A stretch of 63,256 bases of DNA, counting the filler, from Perkinsus chesapeaki ATCC PRA-425 (Eukaryota; Protista; Perkinsozoa): the NCBI GenBank assembly GCA_013115145.1. It is 8 parts of 8 records of this genome, joined end to end, with 100 filler letters (N's around TTAATTAATTAA, not from the genome) between each part and the next. Parts side by side here need not be neighbours in the genome. Positions count along the whole stretch, not along the records: positions 48,778 to 50,717 come from JAAPAO010001724.1; 7 more parts are not named here. The stretch is one strand, 5' to 3'. Made by a program: the position numbers and the translations under genes. The notes under the pieces are model-generated. The model saw only the letters and a program-made list of their open reading frames with translations, was not told the DNA's origin and did no database searches. Numbering within the stretch: the first letter of the stretch is position 1; each line of letters starts with the position of its first letter. This document shows positions 48,659 to 50,717 of the stretch, piece after piece.

Positions 48659-49130
48659 CCGACACTGCAACCAGCTGNNNNNNNNNNNNNNNNNNNNNNN
48701 NNNNNNNNNNNNNNNNNNNNNTTAATTAATTAANNNNNNNNNNNNNNNNNNNNNNNNNNNNNNNNNNNNNNNNNNNNATAATGAAAGTGAAAATGCGCGC
48801 CTCGGACTGGTGCTAGAGGGGAAATTAACAGAATAAAGGGGGAGGAAAAGTCAATCGGAGATGCTGGTCCGCATGGTTTGGAACTCGGCTGAAGTGGCAA
48901 AGGAAGTGCGCGTAATTGGATCAAGTAACGTCAATGTAATACTGGGAAGGGGGGCTAGTAAGTTAGCTTGGAATTAGGCGGAATGCGCAAGTAGTTAGAA
49001 AGTTAGAGGCACTCAAAGTTGGTCGGTGGGGGGTACGTGGAAAATTCGAAATTCGGCCAAGTGCAGGAATTAGATGGCGCGCAAGAATTTAATGCTACCC
49101 TCCCACTGTCTACCTGGACATGTATATGTT

Positions 49131-49212
49131 ACCGTAGCCTATTTGGCTCAAGGTAAATATCAGGTCTGCTCGCTAGGTTGCAGTCGTAAGGCGAATACCA
49201 GTGACGACCTTT
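49131..49212 (+). ncRNA. SL RNA: Spliced-leader (SL) RNA gene with variant 22-nt exon
   Basis: ACCGTAGCCTATTTGGCTCAAG (49131-49152) is followed directly by a GTAAAT donor, a GTCGT/ACGAC stem and T8 at 49210-49217. The ~80-nt length matches published Perkinsus SL RNAs (80-83 nt). Confidence 0.88.
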
Positions 49213-49543
49213 TTTTTGCAAATCAAATTGATTTGCACTCGGTGAAATTGCATTGCAGTTTGAGATAACATCTTTTGAAATTTCATGCAAGTCAATTTCA
49301 CCCCTTGGTCATGAATGAACCCCCGATCCCCCTGGACAATGTTGCTCATCGAACTGCAGAAATACAACATTGTACAAGGGGCGCGGGGATTTCCAACTAT
49401 GCGCTTCAGTGACTTGGCGAGCAAGATAGAGATAGGCAGGGATAAGATGGAGTTGAATGGAATTCGTACAAGTCAAGGAGACTCAGACATATATGGATTT
49501 CAGGATGTATTACAGGAGTATTGTGTAAGTCAATTATTAATAG

Positions 49544-49682
49544 TTGCCTCATGCGAGGCGCCCTAAAAATTGCGATAAGATCCGTTAGAATCTTACGACG
49601 GGAATTGGAGTAGTTTTCAACTAGCAAAAAGCGCATCTCCGCAAGGCGTCATAGATAGCGCTATTGCCCCTCCCGCAAGGAT
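49544..49682 (-). ncRNA. U4: U4 snRNA
   Basis: 5' ATCCTTGCGGGAGGGGCAAT; kink-turn C-TAT-GA-CGC/GCG-GA-G; TTGCTAGTTGAAAAC; Sm site AATTTTTAG; terminal hairpin GCCTC-GCAT-GAGGC. Confidence 0.92.
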
Positions 49683-49833
49683 AGTATGAAATAGCACTGC
49701 AGCCACTTGGCACACTAGGGATATGGCAGAAAGCTGGTAGTATTGAAGGGCATGATAATATAATTTGAAGGGCTTGATAAATTCTTTTGGGGAGATGACT
49801 TTGCTCACACGAGACATTCATTTGACTTGATAG

Positions 49834-49949
49834 TTGGAGCATTGGCTCCGCAAAAATTGTGAAAGTTCACATCAGTGCAGTCATGCCACACGGCAATCTT
49901 TAGTAAAAGGCGAAAGATTGATTCGCTTTGAGATGACCGCTGTGATGCT
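49834..49949 (-). ncRNA. U5: U5 snRNA
   Basis: Invariant loop I region AATCTTTCGCCTTTTACTAAAGATT, long closing stem, Sm site AATTTTTG, 3' hairpin GGAGC-CAAT-GCTCC. Confidence 0.96.
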
Positions 49950-50173
49950 AGTATATGGCGCGGAGAGGAGGACATGTGGATGCCAAGGAGGGGAAGTGCG
50001 GTAATATAAGGGGGGAATTGGCAAATCTTTTGGGACTTTACTTTATGGGCTGGGGTGAAATTTGGGGACTCAGAGGGGAATTATAGGGACTTGGAGGATC
50101 TTTAAAGGTACTTGCATATAATTCAGAGACACCCGTAGGGACTTTTTGGGGCATTATATATATTATTGATTAG

Positions 50174-50348
50174 TTGGTGCCTGCGCTATTTCTTCATTTG
50201 CGCAACGGCACCGCTACCAGAAATTTCGCTGTGGAACCCACACTTGGTGAGCCCTGGAGCTTTACAGTCCTCTGAAGTCGTGCAGTGAGCTGCTCCGCCC
50301 CACGAGAGCGAGCTGCTTGAGCCTCGCCCAACGCCAGCCAGGTAAGTT
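50174..50348 (-). ncRNA. U1: U1 snRNA
   Basis: 5' AACTTACCTGG; loop II CACTGCAC (U1A site); stem III CTCAC-CAA-GTGTGGG; Sm site AAATTTCTGG; stem IV GGTGCC..TGCGC/GCGCA..GGCACC. Confidence 0.94.
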
Positions 50349-50547
50349 ACCCTTAATTATCCCCAGAGGTAACTTCTGGTAGTGTACTTGTATGAAATGT
50401 GGTAAAATATATGAATATAATTGTAAAAATTTACCATTCTTCGGACATCCAGTATTCTCGTGAGGCATTTCTGGGGAACTAGAGGGCACCCAAACCGGTC
50501 CTATTTCCGAGTCGCTGAATGAATGTGATTCATAATTTAATTATCGG

Positions 50548-50717
50548 TTGCCTCAGAGAGGCTTGGGTCCGCCACACTTGACGAAAAGTGCAAGGCCAAG
50601 GCGACAGTTGAGTTGAGGCCCGATCTGGGATCAAGGCCGTCTACTCCCCAGCAAAAAATTGTTGTGACAGTTCTAGCAAGCAGTAGCTTGCATATGAGTT
50701 GTCACACTCATAAGAAC
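50548..50717 (-). ncRNA. U2: U2 snRNA, 5' end (branch-pairing region) lost in the gap
   Basis: GTTCTT then stem IIa ATGAG-TGTGACAA-CTCAT; IIb GCAAGC-TACT-GCTTGC; IIc complement TGTCACA; Sm site AATTTTTTG; loop IV TTGCAC. Confidence 0.88.

Follow-up and report, generated by a model that had tools for sequence, protein, structure and literature searches.

A small-RNA gene island on a Perkinsus chesapeaki contig: four spliceosomal snRNA genes facing a spliced leader RNA gene

Does a short contig of Perkinsus chesapeaki ATCC PRA-425 bring together, as one compact unit, the RNA genes for both cis- and trans-splicing? The contig under study, JAAPAO010001724.1 (1.9 kb), occupies positions 48778-50717 of the window, the whole 63,256-nucleotide (nt) stretch of DNA that was analysed and along which all coordinates are counted. 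The original prediction placed on it four genes for Sm-class small nuclear RNAs (snRNAs), U2, U1, U5 and U4, in tandem on the minus strand and facing a spliced leader (SL) RNA gene on the plus strand. Their identities, order, strand and convergence were all borne out by comparison with Rfam and with published SL sequences. Also upheld was the view of the locus as one compact unit that encodes RNAs for both kinds of splicing. We consider it highly probable that the contig represents an island of small-RNA genes from a Perkinsus-like alveolate, with four snRNAs encoded as separate head-to-tail units and a facing SL gene, working by the mechanism proposed below. As a whole, the earlier interpretation is partly supported. 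The arrangement extends one that was partly published for P. marinus and dinoflagellates, and it is less new than the prediction had implied.

For snRNA calling, the contig was compared with all Rfam families at a permissive threshold. This search returned U4, U5, U1 and U2 (Table 1), with E-values that place the matches far beyond chance, and the gathering score was passed by U4, U5 and U2. On the minus strand the genes stand head-to-tail in the order U2, U1, U5, U4. The spacers measure 212, 226 and 154 nt, respectively, in agreement with the approximately 150-225 bp estimated before. The array and the plus-strand SL RNA gene converge. When U1 was aligned with nine U1 genes from marine metagenomes, all four helices were kept, and 16 of the 46 consensus pairs carried compensatory changes. 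The 5' end of U1, UAACUUACCUGG, holds the 5' splice-site recognition sequence ACUUACCUG, and the gene also has a U1A-type loop with UGCAC and the Sm site AAUUUCUG at 50225-50218. Sm sites are present in the other three genes as well: AAUUUUUAGG in U4 (49571-49562), AAUUUUUGC in U5 (49858-49850), where the invariant loop 1 is conserved in the Rfam alignment, and AAUUUUUUG in U2 (50660-50652). Rfam scans found no 5S, U6 or tRNA gene on the contig, as the earlier failure to see U6 and 5S had indicated. Protein coding does not explain the contig either, again as first described: the longest open reading frames, of 73-83 amino acids, all overlap RNA genes or the hairpins, and Pfam has no match for them. 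The two contig ends share no overlap with each other.

The U4 gene also shows a departure in its U6-pairing region (49660-49682, minus strand), which reads UUGCGGGAGGGGC against the Rfam consensus UUGCGC-AGGGGC, with GGGAGGGG in place of GC-AGGGG. From this change in the pairing stretch, a compensating change is predicted in the organism's U6, which lies outside the contig.

No Rfam model matched the SL gene, which was instead assessed by comparison with the literature. It starts at 49131, exactly where the original prediction had placed the start of the locus. The 22-nt exon, ACCGTAGCCTATTTGGCTCAAG, is identical to DinoSL at 20 of 22 positions and to PmaSL1 at 19 of 22. Across the 26-nt donor region, 23 bases match the P. 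marinus L-type primer PmaSL-LNF3 and 22 match the S-type primer (both primer sequences from Table 1 of Zhang et al. 2011, PMC3101222). The first 14 intron bases, GTAAATATCAGGTC, are those of the P. marinus S-type. Counted along the predicted SL RNA, the first base of the T8 tract is nt 80, for a predicted length of approximately 80-83 nt. In P. marinus, 3' rapid amplification of cDNA ends placed the SL RNA ends at the first three Ts of the T tract, corresponding to 80-83 nt, and the RNAs were also validated by Northern analysis (PMC3101222). Kinetoplastid SL RNA likewise terminates in a T tract (PMC3101222). The minimum free energy fold predicted for the P. chesapeaki SL RNA has two stem-loops, an Sm-like UAUUU in the exon loop and a paired GU donor (z -3.0); the published PmaSLRNA fold has two stem-loops, an Sm-like site in the exon loop and a paired donor as well (PMC3101222). 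Predicted RNA length and T-tract end, Sm-like site in the exon and intron start are all like those of P. marinus. The leader itself is different. It reads CCTATTTGG here, with TATTT and the 3' end GCCTATTTGGCTCAAG, as opposed to CCATCTTGG or CCATCTGG in P. marinus, and 3 of the 26 donor-region bases differ from the L-type. By its SL gene the source is thus a Perkinsus or a closely allied perkinsid, though apparently distinct from the P. marinus types on record.

Upstream of the SL gene, inspection by eye revealed an imperfect gapped direct repeat, GGAATTAG..GG..GCGCAAG, at 48970-48994 and 49066-49090 on the plus strand, approximately -161 and -65 relative to the gene. This repeat may be an SL promoter element.

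Table 1. Features of the P. chesapeaki contig (positions along the window)
Feature	Position	Strand	Details
SL RNA gene	49131-49217	plus	exon 49131-49152; GT donor 49153-49154; intron to T8 tract 49210-49217
U4 snRNA	49547-49682	minus	Rfam RF00015; 99.8 bits, gathering score 46; E 6e-23; model 1-138 (full)
U5 snRNA	49837-49947	minus	Rfam RF00020; 76.6 bits, gathering score 40; E 9e-13; model 1-117 (full)
U1 snRNA	50174-50349	minus	Rfam RF00003; 67.5 bits, gathering score 69.5; E 4e-16; model 1-166 (full)
U2 snRNA, 5'-truncated by contig edge	50562-50717	minus	Rfam RF00004; 64.4 bits, gathering score 46; E 6e-12; model 42-192
Extra small hairpin 3' of U2	50551-50561	minus	extends U2 feature to 50551-50717
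CAACTA	49541-49546	minus	directly past U4 terminal hairpin; 3' flank CAACTATTAAT
CAACTA	49831-49836	minus	directly past U5 terminal hairpin; 3' flank CAACTATCAAG
CAACTA	50171-50176	minus	U1 3' end; 3' flank CAACTAATCAA
CAACCG	50545-50550	minus	past extra small hairpin downstream of U2; 3' flank CAACCGATAAT
TTATATT	49757-49763	minus	81-75 nt upstream of U4; candidate promoter element
TTATATT	50003-50009	minus	62-56 nt upstream of U5; candidate promoter element
TTATATT	50414-50420	minus	71-65 nt upstream of U1; candidate promoter element
Structured element, 175 nt	49219-49393		three consecutive hairpins: 49219-49235, 49241-49302, 49318-49391

How much of this arrangement was known before? In P. 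marinus, S-type SL genes are clustered with downstream U4 and U2 genes (Zhang et al. 2011, PLoS One 6:e19933; PMC3101222, Table 4). The P. chesapeaki contig, likewise short, has U4 and U2 downstream of its SL gene as well. It differs from that report, going by the published description, in having U5 and U1 between U4 and U2, neither of which the paper mentions. The snRNA genes here are also on the strand opposite the SL gene and converge on it, unlike in P. marinus. A cluster of all five snRNAs has been described for Symbiodinium (Breviolum) minutum (Shoguchi et al. 2013, summarised in PMC4083563). As summarised there, this cluster shares with the P. chesapeaki locus the presence of several spliceosomal snRNA genes at one place within the same wider lineage, but it includes U6, whereas the contig has no U6 and does carry an SL RNA gene. 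The original prediction had allowed that its novelty would drop if the arrangement was already published. That applies to the SL-U4-U2 grouping of P. marinus and to the five-snRNA cluster of S. minutum, and not to U5 and U1 between U4 and U2, which is new. Also new are the hairpin and CAAC motif at the snRNA 3' ends, SL-snRNA islands in 12 of 120 marine contigs, and a 175-nt structured element.

Dinoflagellates carry arrays of SL RNA and 5S rRNA genes, some with U6 and also with tRNA genes (Karenia brevis, Lidie and Van Dolah 2007; Zhang et al. 2009; summarised in PMC12584245). These arrays resemble the contig in placing SL genes among other small-RNA genes, and they are multicopy with T-tract ends. 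In the summarised accounts their partners are of the RNA polymerase III (Pol III) type, namely 5S, U6 and tRNA, whereas the partners here are Sm-class snRNAs, without 5S, U6 or tRNA. The SL RNA repeats of trypanosomatids and nematodes are linked to 5S rRNA in multicopy units. Such units likewise combine SL with another small-RNA gene, but their SL sequences are unrelated and they contain no spliceosomal snRNA genes.

To extend the comparison to environmental sequences, metagenome contigs were scanned for an SL exon followed by GTAR. This survey gave 120 loci (L001-L120), and Rfam was run on 20 of them. The exon was almost always canonical DinoSL, and none of the 120 loci had the exon variant of the P. 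chesapeaki contig. U1, U2 or U4 was present on the same contig in 12 of the 120 marine DinoSL loci, convergent cases included. L070 has the order 5S, SL x3, U2, U5, U3, U4, U1, 5S x3, and L111 has U6, a run of tRNA genes, U5, U4, signal recognition particle (SRP) RNA, SL x2, U1, U2, U3 and then an incomplete repeat of the unit. L074, L112 and L114 resemble the P. chesapeaki locus in carrying their SL genes and snRNA genes on opposite strands. Gene order varies among lineages; membership, that is SL with Sm-class snRNAs, recurs. Like the P. chesapeaki contig, the islands L074, L051, L070 and L111 have SL within 0.1-1 kb of U1, U2, U4 and U5 and a hairpin with CAAC in the 3' flank. They differ from it in their canonical DinoSL exon, shorter SL RNA (approximately 55-60 nt), additional U3 and SRP RNA genes, and gene order. 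Taken together with these environmental contigs, the locus suggests that the linkage of SL and snRNA genes is old and widespread in the perkinsid and dinoflagellate lineage rather than a quirk of one species.

Three environmental contigs (L074:1-4139, L051:1-3586 and L024:1-2069), unlike the P. chesapeaki contig, have the island inside a ribosomal DNA (rDNA) intergenic spacer. Between the 3' end of the large subunit gene and the 5' end of the small subunit gene, they carry U4, SRP RNA, U2, U5, U1, U3 and two DinoSL genes. No description of an rDNA spacer carrying SL and snRNA genes was found in the literature searched.

The snRNA genes of the contig share their 3' flank. In transcription orientation, all four have a terminal hairpin that is immediately followed by CAAC, which at U2 comes after the extra small hairpin. 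CAACTA occurs five times on the contig against 0.91 expected, a count reached in 2 of 500 dinucleotide shuffles, and three of the five copies lie exactly at snRNA 3' ends. Among 40 distinct environmental U1, U2, U4 and U5 genes, 27 have CAAC within -8 to +22 of the 3' end, compared with 13% of random windows, although these genes are kin to one another and the nominal p-value of the enrichment is overstated as a result. Environmental U2 genes have the same extra hairpin and then CAAC (counterpart GGCAACA). The SL gene ends differently, in its T8 tract rather than in a hairpin with CAAC. From these sequence patterns we infer that, in this lineage, Sm-class snRNA genes have hairpin plus CAAC as a candidate signal for 3'-end formation.

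Another repeated word is the 7-mer AAGTCAA, with five copies against 0.27 expected (five reached in 0 of 500 shuffles), at 48848, 49289, 49470 and 49527 on the plus strand and at 49822 on the minus strand. One of these copies is directly 3' of the U5 CAACTA. Related AAGTCCC repeats occur four times in the U1-U5 spacer, at 50032-50143.

Upstream of the snRNA genes, TTATATT is the sole clean element in common. The contig contains exactly three copies against 0.45 expected, all on the minus strand and each 5' of an snRNA gene (Table 1), and 7 of 500 shuffles reached this number. Further apparent upstream motifs in common, recorded as observations only, are CCCAAAAG, AGTCCC, GCCAAGT and ATTTCATAC. 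GCCAAGT has three intergenic copies: at 49056-49062 (plus strand, -75 of SL), at 49705-49711 (minus strand, -29 of U4) and at 49412-49418 (minus strand), the last approximately 25 nt upstream of the structured element at 49219-49393 on the minus strand. It may be a promoter-proximal element, or it may recur by chance.

In the mechanism we propose, each snRNA gene would have its own promoter within its 150-230-nt spacer, for which TTATATT at -56 to -81 is the sole candidate in common. The 3' ends of the snRNAs would be formed via the CAAC motif, and the SL RNA would end in its T tract, by analogy with P. marinus. The RNAs would assemble with Sm proteins. U1, U2, U4 and U5 would then serve both cis- and trans-splicing, with the SL RNA donating its 22-nt exon to mRNA 5' ends. 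Within a multicopy unit, physical clustering would allow co-amplification and concerted evolution to keep the set together in both dosage and sequence, and U6 would be encoded elsewhere.

Does the array end with U4? Between SL and U4 lies the 175-nt element at 49219-49393, where inverted repeats I1 and I2 were detected. Its structure is very strong on either strand (fold z -5.07 for plus, -6.36 for minus). Permissive Rfam searches of 48778-49546, covering the SL-U4 spacer and the SL upstream region, were also used to look for SRP RNA, U3, U6, 5S, MRP and tRNA; these candidates were rejected, as only sub-threshold Gut-1, mir-103, SNORD27 and mir-19 were returned. One explanation is that the element is a sixth gene, for a small RNA specific to the lineage. 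It would then be no passive spacer but, if on the minus strand as seems probable, the array's fifth head-to-tail member. Besides the fold, this explanation draws on the distance to U4, which at approximately 150 nt is comparable to the other spacers, and on the minus-strand GCCAAGT, which repeats the motif and the distance seen at U4. On the plus strand, CAACTA follows 3 nt past the last hairpin. In five environmental loci (L074, L051, L106, L111 and L112), an SRP RNA gene comes directly after U4 on the U4 strand. The equivalent position here is held by the structured element, which is not SRP RNA by Rfam.

Other evidence argues against a sixth gene. The element has no Rfam family at E<=10 apart from junk matches, and nhmmer searches with the element, the SL upstream region and the U4-side spacer found no matches in the 120 environmental loci. 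Inspection by eye revealed no Sm site in it and no H/ACA or C/D boxes on either strand. TTATATT is absent upstream, there is no CAAC at the minus-strand end, and no RNA run is listed for the region 49131-49410. In addition, palindromes fold on both strands, and the element may for that reason be a DNA-level boundary or terminator between convergent units. We therefore regard a sixth gene as unlikely. It is quite unlikely, too, that the element is an undescribed perkinsid small RNA of the splicing-RNA island, acting for example as a cofactor of trans-splicing whose role, though not its sequence, would parallel that of nematode SmY or trypanosomatid SLA1. The element could be either a gene for an unknown small RNA or a structured boundary that separates the two convergent units.

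Several results weigh against the contig being an island of working genes. The original prediction treated a failure to match the Rfam models as decisive. Three of the genes pass, and U1, which matches the full model, remains 2 bits below the gathering score (67.5 vs 69.5). The alignment with the nine environmental U1 genes attributes this shortfall to loop insertions of 4 nt and 11 nt in this copy. U2 covers 151 of 192 model positions, and its 5' 41 nt (model 1-41), comprising the branch-point recognition sequence GUAGUA and the 5' U6-pairing region, fall past the contig edge at 50717. The exact SL exon variant was absent from the searchable literature, and its role on mRNAs is only putative. 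When all the upstream regions were aligned locally in pairs, no match stayed significant once multiple testing was allowed for (best match 15 nt, p ~0.035), which leaves the promoter model, built on the single 7-mer TTATATT, weak. When RNA runs were searched with 49131-49410, none was listed as containing this region. Several RNA-labelled runs from other organisms contain 5-9% of the contig's sampled words. As no RNA run contains 49131-49410, these words come from elsewhere on the contig, and plausibly fall in conserved snRNA sequence. In favour of the island, DNA runs of the same organism, from two separate samples and studies, contain 0.86 and 0.74 of the sampled words.

The results against the island could mean that the contig is a pseudogene cluster, made of silent or decaying copies of a multicopy family whose functional snRNA and SL genes are elsewhere. 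The missing RNA run for 49131-49410 and the U1 score with its two loop insertions would fit such a cluster, and so would the three differences between the SL exon and PmaSL1, which lie inside the putative Sm site. P. marinus, moreover, has more than 100 unexpressed SL-like sequences (PMC3101222). Those sequences, however, are without a recognisable intron (PMC3101222). The SL gene here has a recognisable, conserved intron, and its T tract is correctly spaced, which sets it apart from the unexpressed P. marinus copies. Stems, Sm sites and recognition sequences visible on the contig are all intact. All four snRNA genes retain the 3' motif, and the three with visible upstream sequence retain TTATATT; processed pseudogenes would lack such flanks. 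We consider a pseudogene cluster improbable. An assembly chimera joining separately located repeated small-RNA genes is very improbable. The shortness of the contig (1.9 kb), its end within U2 and the multicopy nature of its genes in P. marinus (PMC3101222) would fit a chimera. Against it, the spacers are unique sequence with no long internal repeats that could mis-join, and 74-86% of the sampled words are present in DNA data sets from two different samples. SL, U4 and U2 are also published neighbours in P. marinus, and independent metagenome contigs carry equivalent islands.

Read as a small-RNA gene island, the locus provides a Sm-class RNA toolkit for perkinsid cis- and trans-splicing within approximately 1.6 kb, and it opens no new mechanism. 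The sequences of four snRNAs and a new SL variant can be used for Perkinsus genome annotation and SL-based transcript capture. Expression constructs for a parasite now emerging as a genetic model could also take from the locus a natural set of candidate promoters for small RNAs and candidate 3' signals (hairpin plus CAAC).

The environmental survey gave two further observations. L026:1-10839 contains 69 tRNA genes in 10.8 kb (ARAGORN), nearly all head-to-tail with spacers of approximately 65 nt, and is a near-complete tRNA set in one dense array from an uncultured marine protist. DinoSL RNA, 5S and U6 genes are embedded in this array; arrays of this kind were also noted in L013, L037, L060, L119 and L019. 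A B-box-like motif, GRTTCRANTY, lies 61-78 nt from SL nt 1, immediately beyond the T tract, in 21 distinct environmental SL genes out of 141, against a background of 2% per 95-nt window, and it is absent at the P. chesapeaki SL locus. By analogy with the downstream B block of yeast U6, this environmental layout hints at Pol III-type control or at a tRNA-derived 3' flank.

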